Part shown: piece after piece, positions 42,864-53,300 of the stretch
Numbering within the stretch: the stretch's first letter is position 1
How the letters are laid out: every line of letters starts with the position of its first letter
From: Anthoceros angustus
Lineage: Eukaryota; Plantae; Anthocerotophyta
Direction of reading: 5' to 3'
Assembly (NCBI GenBank): GCA_010909165.1
Contig: MU008198.1
Location: 340,216 to 404,215, forward strand
DNA length: 64,000 bases
Notes under the pieces: generated by a model
What the model was told of the DNA's origin: nothing
Seen by the model: the letters and a program-made list of their open reading frames with translations, nothing else
Databases searched by the model: none
Translations under genes and position numbers: made by a program

Positions 42864-44417
42864 ATGGACCGGGAGTGGGGCAGCAAGCCTGGCAGCGGAG
42901 GGGCCGCGACTGCGCAGAATGAAGCCATCGATCGGCGGGAGCGGCTCCGCCGACTGGCGTTGGAGACGATCGACCTGGCCAAGGATCCCTATTTTATGCG
43001 CAATCATCTTGGAAGGTGCGGAATTGCCTCAGGATTCCTTACGATGGCTCAAAATTGTTGCAGCTGCGGAAATTGCTGACTCTCGGCTGTGCTTTCCAGT
43101 TACGAATGCAAGCTGTGTCTGACACTTCACAACAACGAGGGAAACTACTTGGCGCACACGCAGGGGAAGCGGCATCAGACGAATTTGGCCAAGCGGGCAG
43201 CTCGAGAAGCCAAGGATGCTCCTGCTCAGCCGCAGCCGAACAAGCGGAAGATAGCTCCTCGAAAGACAGGTTAGCAGGTCTTACTTTTTGGTGGCATGGA
43301 GTTTGGTAGGGTTTCGTTCTAGTTTGCAGATGACTGACCTCTGTCTTTGAACTCCAGTTAAGATTGGGAGGCCTGGGTACAGAGTGACGAAGCAGTACGA
43401 TAATGAAACCCGCCAGCGATCCCTGCTTTTCCAGGTTTGTATGGCTTTTCATGTACCAAAGCACGTGACAACGCATATGTGCATCTGGCAAAGAAAACTG
43501 ATATCCGCCATCTGTGCAGATTGAATATCCAGAGATTGAGGACAACGCGAAGCCAAGACATCGTTTTATGTCGTCGTATGAGCAGGTATACTCTCTGTGG
43601 CAAGAGTGTTGGAAAACATGCCTGCTGGTTACAATGTGTGCAGTTGAAAGTAAGCTGGTAAACAGCTTTTCCATGTGCTGTGTGAGTCTACAGAGAGTGC
43701 AAGCATGTGACAAGCAGTATCAATACCTTCTGTTCGCGGCAGAGCCGTATGAGATCATTGCTTTCAAGGTATGGAGCGTTTCTCAAGATCCTCACTTTGT
43801 GTTTGAGGTCAGCACACTCAACATTGTCTGTATCGTGTGCAGATTCCAAGTACAGAAATCGACAAGGTAGCCAACAAGTTCTTCACTCACTGGGACCCTG
43901 ACTCCAAAATGTTCACGGTGAGGCTTGGATATCAGGGTTTTGCTGGAGCAGTGTTTGGGAGGCTTTGCTTGTCGTGGATTCAGACTTTGCTGAAGAGCTG
44001 GTACTGTCCGTGTGCAGCTGCAATTGTATTTCAAATCCAAGCTGCAAGAAATGATGAAGACTGCCGCTGCACCTGTGAATGGTGTACCTGCTCCTCCAGC
44101 AGGGGCACCTCCTGCCCGACCACCTCCTCCCCCAGGGGGTGCCGGTTCTGAGGCTCCTGCTGGCCCTCCCCTGCCGTTGGGCCCACCTCCTCATGGAGCT
44201 CCAGGCCAAATAGGAGCCCTCCACCCCTCCTCCCAGTATGAATGGGCCGCCCCGGCATCCCCACCCTCAGGTGCATTTCCTCCACCCCACCCCACCTCCT
44301 CCTCAGCTTTTGGGAGGCCCAGGCCCCGGCCCTGGCCCTGGCCCTGTCCCCGGCCCACCCCGCAGCTTCCCGCAGGGTCCTCCCCTTCCCCCTATGGGAT
44401 TTACCCCGCTCATGTAG
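42864..44417 (+). CDS. SF3A2: Splicing factor 3A subunit 2 (SF3a66/SAP62), 7 exons, Pro-rich tail
   Basis: Exons 42864-43015, 43100-43269, 43358-43434, 43520-43585, 43694-43768, 43843-43917, 44018-end. MDREWGSKPGSGG, DPYFMRNHLG, zinc finger CKLCLTLHNNEGNYLAHTQGKRH. The tail probably ends TAG 44417 after an apparent C-run frameshift near 44220 (stop at 44464 if read literally). Confidence 0.96.
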
Positions 44418-44791: not shown

Positions 44792-47058
44792 ATGACGAGG
44801 GTCGGGGTTGGATTCTGGCCGCTGCTGGCTGCAACCACTGCTCTGCTACTGCTTTGTGTCCCTGGTAAGTCGCGACTTCTGGCCAGATTGAGATAACAAT
44901 TTTGATATCAAGTTGTCTTTCCCGTTGCCAGTGTACTGAACCATCTGAGGCAACACTAATTCAGCTGCGGGACAGCCGACGAAGCCAGCAGCAATCTTCG
45001 TATTTGGCGACTCCTACGCGGACACTGGAAACAGCAATAAGACCCGTCCTGTCCAAAATTCCAGCTGGAAGTATCCGTACGGCATCACATGGCCCGGGCA
45101 TCCAGCAGGCCGCTATTCCAACGGCAAGGTCTCCACAGACTACCTAGGTAACTAGTCTATGTCGATTGCAGCATGCTTGAAAGTTCACAAAGCTTTAGAT
45201 CTTGAAAAGCTGAGCTTTCAGTTCTGTCCTTGTCCAAACACTCATCACCCATTCTGCATGTTGCTATGTGTCTGTGCTTGCAATCGTAGCTGAGTTGATC
45301 AGGCTTCCCCGTCCGAGGGCCTACCGATCCATAGGACGCAGGTCCAACCCAGGGGGCTTCCGCCAGGGCATCAACTTCGCCGTGGGAGGCGCAGGCGGGC
45401 TCCCGTACGACGACTTGCCCCCCATCTCCCAGCAGGTGGTCCAGCTGAAGGGCGTCTTGAGGCACCATCCCAATCTCTTCGACCTTCGGCGTTCTCTGGT
45501 TTTCCTCTTCGTCAGCGGCAACGACTACCTCTACACCGTGGCCCAAAATCCGTCTACAACACAGGCAGTAAGTGTTTTGTCACAAGCCTACTCACGATGC
45601 GTGGAAGTCGATTTGAAATAGGCATGGAGGAATGGAATTGACGGATCTCACCGATGCGGTGTGGTGAATTGAATCAGGATTTGATTGCGCTCGCAAACAG
45701 AGTGGTGGCAGGAATCGGAGACAACGTGGTGGCCCTCCACCAGGTCGGGTTCCGCTACTTCGCGCTGGGAAACCTGGAGCCAGTGGAATGCCTCCCGGTA
45801 TCCAATCCACAGGGCTACACTACCTGCAACCAAACCCTGCGGGAGCTGAGCGGCTACCATAACCAGCAGCTGCTCGCCGCCATAGCGCATCTCCGGACGT
45901 CGCTTCCAGGCTCCGAGATTGTGGAGCTGGACCTGCACAAAGCGTTCAGCTACGTCATCCAGTACCCGCGCTGGTTCGGTAATGAAGCCCTCTCCCTCCC
46001 TCTCATCAAGCGCATGCATTCCTCACTGCATGCAGCCGGCGCCTTGTTCTGCATGAAATTCTGTCCAGCATCACTCCCGTCTCATTTCTTCCAGGGCTCC
46101 GTGCATATCTCATCTCAAACTTGTTTCAGACGGTGGTGGCCTTGTTGTGAATGACATGCCTTGCAGGAATCAAGCAGCCGCTGGGAGCCTGCTGCCAGCC
46201 CGTGAACCAGTCGCACATCTGCGGGGACTACGATGCCAACAACAACCCTCTCTTCACAGTGTGCTCCAATCCTGAGGAGTGGTTCTTCTGGGACGCCATC
46301 CACCCGACCTCGGCGGGCTGGAGATCCGTCACCTCCCTCTTCTTCTCAGGCTTCAACGTCACGGCCCTGACGCCCAACCTCCTGTGCTGGCTCAACACGC
46401 TCGACCTGGGCGCCCCCCGTCCCAGATCATCCTTCACCCGCGGTAAGCCTTCCCCTTCGCTCCCCTCCTTCCACAATCCTGTCCAGCTGCATCCGAGCTG
46501 ATCACCAATTACCCCGTACTGAGCTACCCCTTCGGCGCGCCCCCGCTCTGTGCAGCCGAGTACGTCGCGCTCGCGTCCAGGCTCCTGCAAGCGGTGAAGA
46601 GGACCGGAGATTACCCGCAGCTGTTGCGCCTGGAGAGAGAGAAGAAGGCCACCCTGGCAGCGCTGCTCCACAGCAACCAGCTCCCAACCGGCGTGCTCAA
46701 CCGGCTGTGGCCGGTGACCGTCTTCCTTCCCACGGAGGCCGCGGTGGAGCGGGAGCTGGGGACGCAGTTCCTGCGCCAGACCCGGTTCCCGGCCGTGGCC
46801 ACCGAGATTGCTCTGCAGCAAGTGGTGTACGGCGCTTGGCCCCTGTCGCGGCTCACGGCCAGCCACGGCCTGTGGTTGGAGACTCTGGCAGGATACAGCG
46901 TGCAGGTGGTGGTGCGAGATGGCGTCGTTTACCTCTCCAGTGGCACGGCCAGGAAGAACGTCACCTTGGCTCGCCCTGATCTCTTCGTTGCTCGGGGCGT
47001 CGGGGTGGTTCACCAGACCACTTCCCTGCTCCTCCCTCCCCACTTATATTTCCCTTAG
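44792..47058 (+). CDS. Secreted GDSL (SGNH) esterase/lipase with a C-terminal fasciclin (FAS1) domain, 537-560 aa, 6 exons
   Basis: Exons 44792-44864 (signal peptide), 44965-45147, 45290-45567, 45678-45978, 46167-46442, 46556 (or 46487)-47058. Motifs FGDSY, INFAVGGAG, SGNDY, WDAIHP; FAS1 VTVFLPTEAA, LETLAG, PDLFVARGVGVVHQTTSLLLP. The GDSL part is high confidence; the fusion is inferred from phase-compatible splice sites. Confidence 0.8.
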
Positions 47059-47148
47059 CCCACGGGTGTCGCACTTCTGTTTGTTGTAACACGATGGAAA
47101 ACGATAAGTGGGGTGTTTTGGTTTCTCTACTACCTATATGTATTGGAC

Positions 47149-47354
47149 AAATGGATAATTTATTCAGGTGAAAGAACGATGGACAGAGACAAATGGATGA
47201 TTTATTGAGGTGAAAGAATGATGGAAAGAGACCATCTAAGAGGGACAACAAATGGGGACCTGGGGTGGAAAGAGACCATCTAAGAGGGACAACAAATGGG
47301 GACCCGGGGTGGAAAGAGACCATCTAAGAGGGACAACAAATGGGGACCCGGGGG
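47149..47354. repeat. Tandem repeats in the putative 3' UTR of the non-LTR element (2 x ~44 bp and 3 x 44 bp)
   Basis: GGAAAGAGACCATCTAAGAGGGACAACAAATGGGGACC.GGGGT at 47223, 47267 and 47311. Confidence 0.95.
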
Positions 47355-47369: not shown

Positions 47370-50300
47370 AGCAACTGAGCTCCCTACCTAGTGACAAACT
47401 GCACCCACAACAATGTCATATGCAGGTAGAATAAACGGCCTGCAAACCATGGAGGAAGAGGAAAAGGCATCACCCACCGTCGTCGCCTTATGGAGAATCG
47501 CCATTGAGAGCGCCCGTTGAAGAGCAATAGAAACCCGCCGGAAGTATGCCGTGAAGTACGAGAGGGACATGCACTATGCCTCACAAGATGGTAAGCTTTG
47601 GCACAAGACTTGATGAATTTGTCAAAGTCCTCACCATTGCCCCATACGCTTTAGAGCAAGCGGATAAAGAGGTGGCCCGCTTGCATCCCGCTATACTTGA
47701 CCTTGAGAGTCAGACGGCAAGGACGGTGGTGATGACTGCGAGGTGGCGCCACGCGTGTGGTCAAGAACCACTACATCCGCCACCACAACCTCGTCGCCAC
47801 GACAAGGTATAAGTCCGCCTCGATTGAACGACCGTAAGAAGAGTATACTCCCGCCTCCTCCAGCCATATAGCCACTTTCGCGAGCAATGGCAAACATGAC
47901 GCCACGGATGGCGCTGAGTGGCAATGCGGCGACTGGGGACAACGAGCAAGGTGGACACCGAGACGCCAAGAGCAGAGCCGCACTCACAAGTGAGGAGCCA
48001 AGAAGCCACAGCCGGAGTAGGCCGAGACGGAATCGCATCGCAAAGAGTGAAGGTGGTGGTGCGATGTGAAATCCTGATGCATGGGCGGGCCAAGAGCCAA
48101 GCACCCGCCTCCTTCCTGCAACAAGAGCGAGCCGCCTAGTGGACCTGGAGATGGAGGGGTCCCGGAGGATGATCAAAAGCTCGGCCGAGCCGCTCGAGTA
48201 GAGATGCCTCGCGCATGGTAAGCTTTGGCACAAGACTTGATGAATTTGTCAAAGTCCTCACCATTGCCCCATACGCTTTAGAGCAAGCGGATAAAGAGGT
48301 GGCCCGCTTGCATCCCGCTATACTTATGACCTTGAGAGCCGACGCAAGCACCGACGGTTGGTGATGACTGCGAGGTGGCGCCACGCGGTGGTCAGAACCA
48401 CTACATCCGCCACCACAACCTCGTCGCCACGACAAGGTATAAGTCCGCCTCGATTGAACGACCAGAAGAAGAGTATACTCCCGCCTCCTCCAGCCATATA
48501 GCCACTAAAGCAATGGCAAACATGACGCCACGGATGGCGCTGAGTGGCAATGCGGCGACTTCGTGGGGACAACGAGCAAGGTGGACACCGAGACGCCAAG
48601 AGCAGAGCCGCACTCACAAGTGAGGAGCCAAGAAGCCACAGCCGGAGTATCTTTGTGAAATCTGAGAGGACACCTGCACTATACTGCAGCGCATGGTAAG
48701 CTTTGGCACAAGACTTGATGAATTTGTCAAAGTCCTCACCATTGCCCCATACGCTTTAGAGCAAGCGGGATAAAGAGGTGGCCCGCTTGCATCCCGCTAT
48801 ACTTATGACCTTGAGAGCGCGCACGGCGGCCTGACGGTTGGTGATGACTGGCGGAGGTGGCGTCACGTCGGTCGGTAACCACTACATCCGCCACCACAAC
48901 ACAGTCGCCACGACAAGGTATAAGTCCGCCTCGATTGAACGACCAGAAGAAGAGTATACTCCCGCCTCCTCCAGCCATATAGCCACTTTCGCGAGCAATG
49001 GCAAACATGACGCCACGGATGGCGCTGAGTGGCAATGCGGCGACTCGTGGGGACAACGAGCAAGGTGGACACCGAGACGCCAAGAGCAGAGCCGCACTCA
49101 CAAGTGAGGCGAAGAAGCCACAGCCGGAGTAGGCCGAGACGGAATCGCATCGCAAAGAGTGAAGGTGGTTGGTGCGATGTGAAATCCTGATGCATGGGCG
49201 GGCCAAGAGCCAAGCACCGCCTCCTTCCTGCAACAAGAGCGAGCCGCCTAGTGGACCTGGAGATGGAGGGGTCCCGGAGGATGATCAAAAGCTCGGCCGA
49301 GCCGCTCGAGTAGAGATGCCTCGCAATCCCTAAAGCCATCTGATAAATGTAGAGAAAGGAGGGAAGTCCTTCCGAGCATCCGCCGATAACATGTCTCCGG
49401 CCCGCCTCAAGGACGATTGAGAGAGAAGGTTCCCTCCTCCACACTTGATACGAGATCCTCGAGAAAGGGCTTGTCATGGAGGATGAAACGGGAAGCCAAG
49501 GCAGGCAGAGGGCCCAACTCCCAAGAAAGCCGGGAAGAGACCTCGATGAGAGCACCCCACGCCCAAATTGCACAGTGGATGCTTGCCACCAGACGCCCTG
49601 TGGCACTCAAAAGCCCCGAGCCCAAGATGTCCCCAAGAGTATCCATAATCTTCAGATCAAACCCCGAGCCGGACAAAAGGACCGAGACTGAGGCAGACGG
49701 ATGAGGTACCTGTGGCGCCTAGCAAAAAGGAAAGGATTCCAAAGGCCACCCGAGCATCCTCCAAAGAAAGGAGGTCTTCAATATGGGAGAGGTCCTCTGC
49801 AAGGGCCTTGTCCAGAAGCTCCCAATGAAGTCTGGGAACCAAAGGGGACCCCAAGAACTGCATCAAGAGCCGAGCAATCTCCCAGCAGAAACCGCAGAGT
49901 AGGCGTGATCCCCGACGGAGACCACGCTGCACTTGGACATCTTGACCTTCAAGCCCACCAACGAAAGCTCTAAGAGAATATCTCAAAGGCCTCCTTGACT
50001 TTGTCCCTGTGCCCGAGGATGTGAGAATCGCCAACGAAGGGAAGACACACTGGCTGGAGAGGGCGGCCCAGACAGGCCCTATAGTGAGCAATAGCGAAGA
50101 GAGCACCAGCGGTCGCCTTGCTCGGTACCGTGGCCGATTCCAAGACGAGACGGCAAACTCAAGAGACGTTTGTGCCGGTAGTAGAGGTTGGAGGACCTCC
50201 GTAGAAGCACCGGACAAAGGGTATAAGACTCAGACGCCGCCAAGATCCCTAAGCTCCTCAAAGATGACGCCCGGAAATGGTATTGAAGGCGCTCGACATC

Positions 50301-53300
50301 CACCGTAAGACTACCCAATCCGGGTGGGTATCAAGGCAAGCTTTCACCCCTAGCACCATGCATCAGCCTGAGTGGCAATGCCAAATTGAAGGGGTTGAAG
50401 TGCCGGAGAAGGGAGCGGCATCAGAGGGCGATAGTGCGGCCGAGTAGCCGCATGAAGGCCTCCCAACCGCGAGTGGGCGACGCCGAGTGAAGGTGCTTGT
50501 CCATAGCGACAAGCCTACTAGCCGCAAGAACAAATCCGGTGAGGCATCTCTCCACGAGCCACCGCAGCAGAGAAAAGAGCTCGAAAGCCGCTAGATGGAT
50601 CTTCGGGAGAAAGAGGTCCCTAAGGTGTTCGAACACCATTCCCGACAAACCGCAGATGAAAGACGAGGGGTTGTGGAGAGAGCTGAGCAAAAGCCGCCCG
50701 TGGGAGAAGGGATCCTCGGGACATAGTCGGATATGTCCGGGAATGGCATCCTTAGGTGGCGGATGGAGGGCAGAGGGCAATTGTCTCTTCAAGCGGAGGC
50801 CGAGGCAGATCGCATCGCAGAGTGAAGGTGGTTGGTGCGATGTGAAATCCCGTATGCATGGGCGGGCCAAGAGCCAAGCACCGCCTCCTTCCTGTAACAA
50901 GAGCGAGCCGCCTAGTGGACCTGGAGATGGAGGGGTCCCGGAGGATGATCAAAAGCTCGGCCGAGCCGCTCGAGTAGAGATGCCTCGCAATCCCTAAAGC
51001 CATCGATGATAAATGTAGAGAAAGGAGGGAAGTCCTTCCGAGCATCCGCCGATAACATGTCTCCGGCCCGCCTCAAGGACGATTGAGAGAGAAGGTTCCC
51101 TCCTCCACACTTGATACGAGATCCTCGAGAAAGGGCTTGTCATGGAGGATGAAACGGGAAGCCAAGGCAGGCAGAGGGCCCAACTCCCAAGAAAGCCGCC
51201 GGGAAGAGACCTCGATGAGAGCCCCACGCCCAAATTGCACAGTGGATGCTTGCAGGCGGGCAGGCAGGCACTCAAAAGCCCCGAGCCCAAGATGTCCCCA
51301 AGAGTATCCATAATCTTCAGATCAAACCCCGAGCCGGACAAAAGGACCGAGACTGAGGCAGACGGATGAGGTACCAGGCGCCTAGCAAAGCAGAAGGAAA
51401 GGATTCCAAAGGCCACAGGCATCCTCCAAAGAAAGGAGGTCTTCAATATGGGAGAGGTCCTCTGCAAGGGCCTTGTCCAGAAGCTCCCAATGAAGTCGGG
51501 GAACCAAAGGGGACCCCAAGAACTGCATCAAGAGCCGAGCAATCTCCCAGCAGAAACCGCAGAGTAGGCGTGATCCCCGACGGGACCGCTGCACTTGGAC
51601 ATCTTGACCTTCAAGCCCACCAACGAAAGCTCGAAGAGAATATCTCAAAGGCCTCCTTGACTTTGTCCCTGTGCCCGAGGATGTGAGAATCGCCCCGCCA
51701 ACGAAGGGAAGACACACAGGCTGGAGAGGGCGGCCCAGACAGGCCCTATAGTGAGCAATAGCGAAGAGAGCACTAGCGGTCGCCTTGCTCGGTACCGTGG
51801 CCGATTCCAAGACGAGACGAAACTCAAGAGACGTTCAGGCCGGTAGTAGAGGTTGGAGGACCTCCGTAGAAGCACCGGACAAAGGGTATAAGACTCAGAC
51901 GCCGCCAAGATCCCTAAGCTCCTCAAAGATGACGCCCGGAAATGGTATTGAAGGCGCTCGACATCCACCGTAAGACTACCCAATCCGGGTGGGTATCAAG
52001 GCAAGCCACCCCTAGCACCATGCACTCAGCCCCTGAGTGGCAATGCCAAATTGAAGGGGTTGAAGTGCCGGAGAAGGGAGCGCATCAGAGGCGATAGTGC
52101 GGCCGAGTAGCCGCATGAAGGCCTCCCAACCGCGAGTGGGCGACGCCGAGAAGTGTGCTTGTCCATAGCGAAGCCTACTAGCCGCAAGAACAACCGGTGA
52201 GGCATCTCTCCACGAGCCACCGCAGAGAAAAGAGCTCGGAAGAGAATATCTCAAAGGCCTCCTTGACTTTGTCCCTGTGCCCGAGGATGTGAGAATCGCC
52301 AACGAAGGGAAGACACAGCTGCTGGAGAGGGCGGCCCAGACAGGCCCTATAGTGAGCAATAGCGAAGAGAGCACCGCCTAGCGGTCGCCTTGCTCGGTAC
52401 CGTGGCCGATTCCAAGACGAGACGGCAAACTCAAGAGACGTTTGTGCCGGTAGTAGAGGTTGGAGGACCTCCGTAGAAGCACCGGACAAGGTATAAGACT
52501 CAGACGCCGCCAAGATCCCTAAGCTCCTCAAAGATGACGCCCGGAAATGGTATTGAAGGCGCTCGACATCCACCGTAAGACTACCCAATCCGGGTGGGTA
52601 TCAAGGCAAGCCACCCCTAGCACCATGCACTCAGCCCTGAGTGGCAATGCCAAATTGAAGGGGTTGAAGTGCCGGAGAAGGGAGCGCATCAGAGGCGATA
52701 GTGCGGCCGAGTAGCCGCATGAAGGCCTCCCAACCGCGAGTGGGCGACGCCGAGAAGTGTGCTTGTCCATAGCGAAGCCTACTAGCCGCAAGAACAACCG
52801 GTGAGGCATCTCTCCACGAGCCACCGCAGAGAAAAGAGCTCGGAAAGCCGCTAGATGGATCTTCGGGAGAAAGAGGTCCCTAAGGTGTTCGAACACCATT
52901 CCCGACAAACCGCAGATGAAAGACGAGGGGTTGTGGAGAGAGAGCAAAAGCCGCCCGTCCAGTGGAGAAGGGATCCTCCGGCAAAGGGAGGTCTTCAATA
53001 TGGGAGAGGTCCTCTGCAAGGGCCTTGTCCAGAAGCTCCCAATGAAGTCGGGGAACCAAAGGGGACCCCAAGAACTGCATCAAGAGCCGAGCAATCTCCC
53101 AGCAGAAACCGCAGAGTAGGCGTGATCCCCGACGGGACCGCTGCACTTGGACATCTTGACCTTCAAGCCCACCAACGAAAGCTCTAAGAGAATATCTCAA
53201 AGGCCTCCTTGACTTTGTCCCTGTGCCCGAGGATGTGAGAATCGCCCGCCAACGAAGGGAAGACACACAGGCTGGAGAGGGCGGCCCAGACAGGCCCTAT

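Follow-up and report, generated by a model that had tools for sequence, protein, structure and literature searches.

Does a GDSL lipase gene of the hornwort Anthoceros angustus continue into a fasciclin (FAS1) domain, so that an enzyme and a second extracellular module are made as one secreted protein? The question is raised by positions 44792-47058 of a stretch of 64,000 nucleotides (nt) from contig MU008198.1 (assembly GCA_010909165.1, positions 340,216 to 404,215), hereafter called the window, in which an earlier note made from the letters alone had described a GDSL enzyme apparently fused to a FAS1-like domain. The fusion is real and conserved, and it is transcribed in relatives. We consider it probable that the segment constitutes a single gene and encodes a secreted protein of two domains, a GDSL/SGNH esterase or acyltransferase with a C-terminal FAS1 domain that would serve as a non-catalytic binding module in the apoplast. 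Genes of this layout form a small multi-copy family, found so far in hornwort-type material only and in at least two sources besides the window.

The junction between the two domains is conserved among relatives

The exon that completes the GDSL enzyme (exon 5) ends at the phase-1 donor CGCG|GTAAGC at 46442/46443, a position that the earlier note had proposed and that the splice-site check bore out. An exhaustive list of in-frame GT...AG pairs contains two acceptors that keep the frame downstream of this donor, at 46486 (44-nt intron) and at 46555 (113-nt intron). Both had been put forward with equal standing; both are indeed in frame, but they are not equivalent. Judged by comparison of the loci described below, the conserved acceptor is 46555, giving the 113-nt intron, and the 44-nt intron was rejected as the main form because its acceptor has no counterpart in the three related genomic loci L001-L003 and because it would lengthen by 23 residues an inter-domain stretch that already exceeds that of the protein of the hornwort Nothoceros. 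Splicing out the 113-nt intron (46443-46555) would also remove the stop codon at which a GDSL-only protein would end. With intron 5 retained, the GDSL frame ends at 46499-46501, as had been predicted, and retention could yield an isoform that lacks the FAS1 domain.

The FAS1 frame (46447-47055) comprises 203 open codons and not a single Met, and an ATG in any form is absent between 46443 and the H1 motif of the FAS1 domain. The FAS1 exon therefore offers no start for a protein of its own, and the earlier note had likewise seen no evident signal peptide in it.

A HMMER search of 1.84 billion cluster representatives with exon 6 as the query returned 103 matches, the closest of them at 46% identity, and a local scan of all 103 detected a GDSL part in P0019 only. 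This protein of 533 amino acids (aa) scores 44 bits with the Pfam profile Lipase_GDSL and 33.6 bits with Fasciclin (gathering scores, 23.6 and 22 bits, respectively). In EukProt, P0019 and P0104, which are 90% identical to each other, are open reading frames (ORFs) of Trinity transcripts of Nothoceros aenigmaticus, both marked "complete". The best matches to exon 6 also included three short ORFs (P0002, P0006, and P0025) from contigs of the read set SRR33208241. By tBLASTn, contigs L001-L003 of this read set carry GDSL exons 3 to 5 and then the FAS1 exon, all on one strand and ordered as in the window, with which exon borders are shared. At each of the four loci (the window and L001-L003), a consensus phase-1 donor (GTAAGC, GTAACT, GTAAGT, and GTGAGT) lies 6 to 11 codons past the W..N.L.L motif. 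The in-frame YAG acceptor, which is 46555 in the window, follows 109 to 136 nt after the donor, just before a conserved (V)YE..A..L helix.

Contig L004, from read set SRR33208242, provides direct splice evidence. It equals L003 minus three introns and is otherwise identical; intron 5 is gone at exactly the predicted bases (...CCCGCG|CCGACG...), and an ORF runs through both domains. The product of this ORF, P0105 (233 aa), is a further member of the cluster and continues from GDSL block V directly into the FAS1 domain. L004 keeps intron 2 and is thus a partly processed transcript; its exons 3 and 4 score 31.9 bits with Lipase_GDSL, above the gathering score.

Between the window and L001, exon 6 is 42% identical, compared with 43% for exon 3 and 41% for exon 4, and the invariant FAS1 positions in the family alignment fall at the H1 and H2 motifs. 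Since exon 6 is as conserved as exons 3 and 4 and its H1 and H2 positions are invariant, it is under constraint. Of the genomic loci, the window copy scores highest with Fasciclin. Word-index searches found no further members, whether the query was exon 6 by itself, an alignment of four family members, or P0019; the search with P0019 returned only a conifer GDSL protein and a bacterial autotransporter-type GDSL protein.

The gene model and the GDSL half

Three-frame reading and the splice-site check resolve positions 44792-47058 (+) into one intact gene of six exons, with 1,614 coding nt that amount to 537 codons plus a stop and no internal stop. Introns 1 to 5 measure 100, 142, 110, 188, and 113 nt and have GT-AG boundaries in 5/5 cases, and the start codon at 44792 is the first ATG downstream of an in-frame stop. 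The features of the gene are collected in Table 1.

Pfam was run on each window exon separately. In this check against the Lipase_GDSL and Fasciclin profiles, which the earlier note had proposed for the spliced protein, exons 2, 3, and 4 match consecutive parts of Lipase_GDSL with 16.2, 21.0, and 22.8 bits, each alone below the gathering score of 23.6, and exon 6 matches Fasciclin above its cutoff. The claim of a signal peptide followed by a catalytically complete enzyme likewise holds. The product of exon 1 is hydrophobic and signal-peptide-like, and direct reading together with alignment to a conifer GDSL protein (P0107, Cryptomeria japonica) locates all four SGNH blocks (FGDSYADTGN, GRYSNGK, SGNDY, and WDAIHPT). 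P0107 is also 36% identical overall to P0019, and the GDSL half is an ordinary plant GDSL protein of the type to which NCBI gives the label At5g03610-like. Judged by these motifs, the window copy should be catalytically competent as a GDSL/SGNH esterase or acyltransferase of this type; none of the papers found in a literature search assigns a function to At5g03610.

Table 1. Exons and junction intron of the GDSL-FAS1 gene (positions of the window)
Feature	Position	Strand	Content
Exon 1	44792-44864	+	Start codon and hydrophobic signal-peptide-like segment; phase-1 donor CTG|GTAAGT
Exon 2	44965-45147	+	GDSL block I (GDSY, Ser codon 45012-45014) and block II (GRYSNGK, 45108-45128); Pfam Lipase_GDSL profile 1-30; 57% identity to P0107
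Exon 3	45290-45567	+	GDSL block III (GNDY, Asn codon 45520-45522); Pfam Lipase_GDSL profile 34-95
Exon 4	45678-45978	+	Central GDSL region; Pfam Lipase_GDSL profile 111-176; borders common to L001 and L002
Exon 5	46167-46442	+	GDSL block V (DAIH; Asp 46292-46294, His 46301-46303), usual GDSL C-terminus, and short Pro/Arg/Ser-rich tail up to the phase-1 donor
Intron 5	46443-46555	+	113 nt, GTAAGC...TGCAG, phase 1, GC 0.62; homologous intron exactly removed in contig L004
Exon 6	46556-47058	+	One complete FAS1 domain; two N-terminal helices; H1 VTVFLPTEAA at about 46711-46740; QQ for [YF]H at 46816-46821; invariant His of H2 at 47011-47013; stop codon TAG at 47056-47058

Exon 6 encodes a divergent FAS1 domain

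The Pfam Fasciclin profile matches exon 6 with 24.4 bits over profile positions 5 to 123 of 123. An AlphaFold model of the exon, built with 23 homologues, has a mean predicted local distance difference test score (pLDDT) of 84 and a predicted template modeling score of 0.79. At an E value of ≤0.001, Foldseek matched this model to FAS1 proteins only, besides FAS1-like viral p15 and mitoribosomal chains. A second structure aligner gave Z scores of 15.0 for AstaP-pink1 (22iy; root mean square deviation of 2.6 Å with 136/161 residues aligned), 12.7 for CupS, and 12.6 each for TGFBIp and insect fasciclin I. Overall, it listed 30 FAS1 or FAS1-like entries at Z scores of 7.5 to 15, with unrelated rows at ≤3.6. 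A search of the PDB with the single exon-6 ORF as a sequence gave chance matches only; a family profile of the exon-6 relatives matched FAS1 chains (E value of 4e-5). Both the profile match and the predicted fold thus agree with the uninterrupted in-frame FAS1-like domain that had been proposed, and by these two measures exon 6 is a true but divergent FAS1 domain.

The structural matches span residues 3 to 166 of the model, including two helices at exon residues 2 to 38. These two N-terminal helices belong to the FAS1 fold, so that exon 6 is one domain, and most of what had earlier been taken for a linker ahead of FAS1 is in fact part of it. What is left as an inter-domain tail is the last 12 or so residues of exon 5.

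Exon 6 keeps both H1 (VTVFLPT) and H2 (VVH...LLLPP). The earlier observation that the [YF]H motif is replaced in the window was confirmed: the position reads QQ there, SQ, RQ, and SN in L001-L003, and VH in Nothoceros, and it is followed by a family-specific VYG[WA]WP motif. The protein ends 6 residues past H2 with no hydrophobic tail, and exons 5 and 6 together contain two [AST]P dipeptides, which are not clustered. A glycosylphosphatidylinositol (GPI) signal and an arabinogalactan protein (AGP) region are therefore absent, as the earlier note had also reported. The nearest matches to exon 6 outside the family are bacterial and metagenomic multi-FAS1 proteins at about 30% identity; their scores are sums over repeats and are thus uninformative on the origin of the FAS1 module.

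Proposed function and origin

The mature order of the protein would be a signal peptide, a GDSL/SGNH enzyme, a tail of about 12 residues, and one FAS1 domain supplied by a single phase-1 exon. By analogy with the carbohydrate-binding module of a glycosidase, the FAS1 domain may position or hold the enzyme at an apoplastic partner, such as a wall polymer, a glycoprotein, or the cell surface. Tethering of the esterase to wall or cuticle matrix, which the earlier note had suggested, would be a possible form of this role. The gene probably arose by capture of a neighbouring FAS1 domain exon. Under this scenario, a donor close to the old GDSL stop would have come to be spliced to the phase-1 domain exon of a secreted FAS1 gene next to it, whose signal-peptide exon would have been lost.

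Evidence against a functional two-domain protein and alternative readings

Several observations weigh against the view of the window gene as a functional, spliced enzyme-FAS1 fusion. The 46442/46556 junction in A. angustus is placed by comparison with the relatives. Intron 5 has an exon-like GC content of 0.62, compared with 0.42 to 0.52 for introns 1 to 4 (exons, 0.57 to 0.65); the spliced intron of L003 is likewise GC-rich, at 0.57. The very paralogue with direct splice evidence, L003/L004, has a GDSL half that looks degenerate, with a frameshift in exon 2 and a block I that lacks TGN. In addition, an in-frame stop precedes the intron-4 donor that L004 uses (L003 position 719), and splicing from the phase-1 donor expected at 656 would leave the frame broken (L003:656-814/L004:2440-2510). 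Possible explanations are that this paralogue is a transcribed pseudogene or that it follows a splice pattern that was not recognised. L002 has an in-frame stop within block V (FF*DGVHPS). In P0019 the catalytic residues Ser, Asn, and Asp are missing (GGGY, GDDY, and WNSIHPT, respectively), and its full-length model has a pLDDT of 54, derived from a shallow and partly misaligned alignment of fragments, at which the packing of the domains is unreadable. P0104 lacks Ser, Asn, and Asp as well, and its His is also gone (WSSIYPT). Judged by these substitutions, both Nothoceros proteins are likely pseudoenzymes that retain the FAS1 domain, and catalysis is thus not a fixed property of the family.

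A different role for the FAS1 domain, that of a carrier of a hydrophobic ligand, is unlikely. Its helical "jaw" would hold a lipophilic molecule, either a xanthophyll or an acyl chain of the wax or cutin type, and offer it to the GDSL active site, so that the protein would be a self-contained esterase or acyltransferase for insoluble substrates. This reading draws on the structural comparison of the predicted fold, in which AstaP-pink1 is the best match, 2.3 Z units above the next one and with the two N-terminal helices included. AstaP is likewise a secreted single-FAS1 protein, and its α1 and α2 helices form a carotenoid tunnel (PMC10147662). Moreover, an apoplastic GDSL enzyme, wheat XAT, esterifies xanthophylls (PMC13415971). 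Against these points, identity to AstaP is only about 21%, and a common fold does not establish function. The Phe of H1 (VTVFLPT) is also kept and may match position 57 of AstaPo1; a bulky Phe at that position accompanies non-binding in a cyanobacterial homologue (PMC10147662). We give a small chance to the more specific proposal that the predicted AstaP-like FAS1 domain and the GDSL enzyme would let one secreted protein both carry and modify a lipophilic apoplastic molecule (a xanthophyll or a cutin or wax precursor). If it were true, this would be the first small-ligand-binding FAS1 domain in a land plant, and the catalytically dead paralogues would be pure carriers.

It is quite unlikely that the A. 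angustus gene produces a GDSL-only protein ending at 46499-46501, with the FAS1 exon as an untranslated remnant and the fusion active only in relatives. The exon-like GC content of intron 5 and the decay seen in some relatives (L002 and L003/L004) would fit such a history. Against it, the window retains a 203-codon open frame in the right phase, a Fasciclin match that is above the cutoff and the top score among the genomic loci, all of the FAS1 core positions, and a consensus donor and acceptor at the conserved position, and exon 6 is not more diverged than the GDSL exons. For the window copy, an unused relic is therefore unlikely.

Two separate adjoining genes that merely appear joined are highly improbable and were rejected: plant GDSL and FAS1 proteins are normally separate and exon 5 reaches about the end point of the GDSL-only conifer protein P0107, but the FAS1 frame has no Met or upstream ATG with which to begin, single ORFs cross both domains in the Nothoceros transcript and in contig L004, the arrangement is repeated at four loci with a conserved intron that is spliced exactly in L004, and an antisense ORF (46228-47043) has no Pfam match.

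Sequence surrounding the gene

The upstream neighbour (43800-44417, +) ends in a very proline-rich C-terminal exon (PPPPGG... and GPGPGPGP runs). Its stop lies about 375 nt before the GDSL start codon, and the two genes are thus closely spaced. Just past the stop of the GDSL-FAS1 gene, positions 47146-47353 hold two adjoining tandem arrays, one of period 42 with 2.1 copies and one of period 44 with 3.0 copies (98% identity). Farther downstream, from 47576 to 52000 and beyond, there are long tandem or nested repeats with short repeated ORFs: a unit of about 630 nt occurs three times (47588-49130) and is followed by a unit of about 1,665 nt in at least two copies at 98 to 100% identity (49190-52000). 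No synteny outside the gene was found between the window and L001-L003. In L002, a second GDSL exon-2-like sequence (L002:96-284, -) stands head-to-head with the GDSL-FAS1 gene (L002:4399-6561, +) about 4 kb upstream of it, with a PBP (PF01161) gene in between.

Comparison with known systems

The roles of FAS1 domains in plants are poorly understood, because nearly all of these domains occur in heavily glycosylated fasciclin-like AGPs (FLAs). The combination of an enzyme of readable activity with a naked FAS1 domain would be a simple system in which localisation, binding, and activity could be compared with and without the FAS1 part. The occurrence of intact and catalytically dead copies in one family also offers a natural series on how a GDSL part might turn into a scaffold. 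Gene predictors may stop at 46499-46501, with the result that genes of this kind would be annotated as plain GDSL lipases.

Full-text searches found no paper that describes the combination of GDSL and fasciclin domains, and a review of FAS1 (PMC6032426) and a survey of hornwort AGPs (PMC12209756) are silent on it. None of the 103 matches to exon 6 shows the combination outside hornwort-type material, although unrelated combinations elsewhere, e.g., in bacteria, are possible. In keeping with the earlier note, no description of such a protein was found in papers or among annotated proteins. The GDSL-FAS1 protein thus represents a real, lineage-limited, and undescribed architecture assembled from two well-known extracellular domains.

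With ordinary plant GDSL esterase/lipase proteins, represented by P0107, the window protein has in common the signal peptide, the four SGNH blocks with Ser, Gly, Asn, and Asp/His, and the order of the conserved segments. The ordinary proteins end about 12 residues past the W.N.L motif, whereas the window gene has a phase-1 donor there and a whole FAS1 domain added. FLAs are also secreted plant proteins with a FAS1 domain that includes the H1 and H2 motifs, and a GPI-anchor signal is frequent but not universal among them. The window protein differs in that it carries neither an AGP glycomotif region nor a GPI signal, that its FAS1 domain is preceded by an enzyme, and that QQ stands at the [YF]H position, together with the VYG[WA]WP motif. 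Lacking an AGP region and a GPI signal, it is not an FLA, and it would fail the criterion of the hornwort AGP survey, which calls for at least three clustered [STAGV]P dipeptides (PMC12209756).

The AstaP proteins of green microalgae (PDB 22iy and 8c18) are likewise secreted, with a single FAS1 domain and two N-terminal helices. They stand alone with no enzyme fusion, are about 21% identical to exon 6, and resemble it here in predicted fold only. An enzyme-FAS1 fusion has a precedent in bryophytes, the moss amidase PpFAAH8 (PMC7033180), in which a FAS1 domain is likewise joined to a hydrolase in a non-seed plant, although the enzyme is of a different class. Together, such enzyme-FAS1 fusions suggest a recurring accessory use of the FAS1 domain in non-seed plants.

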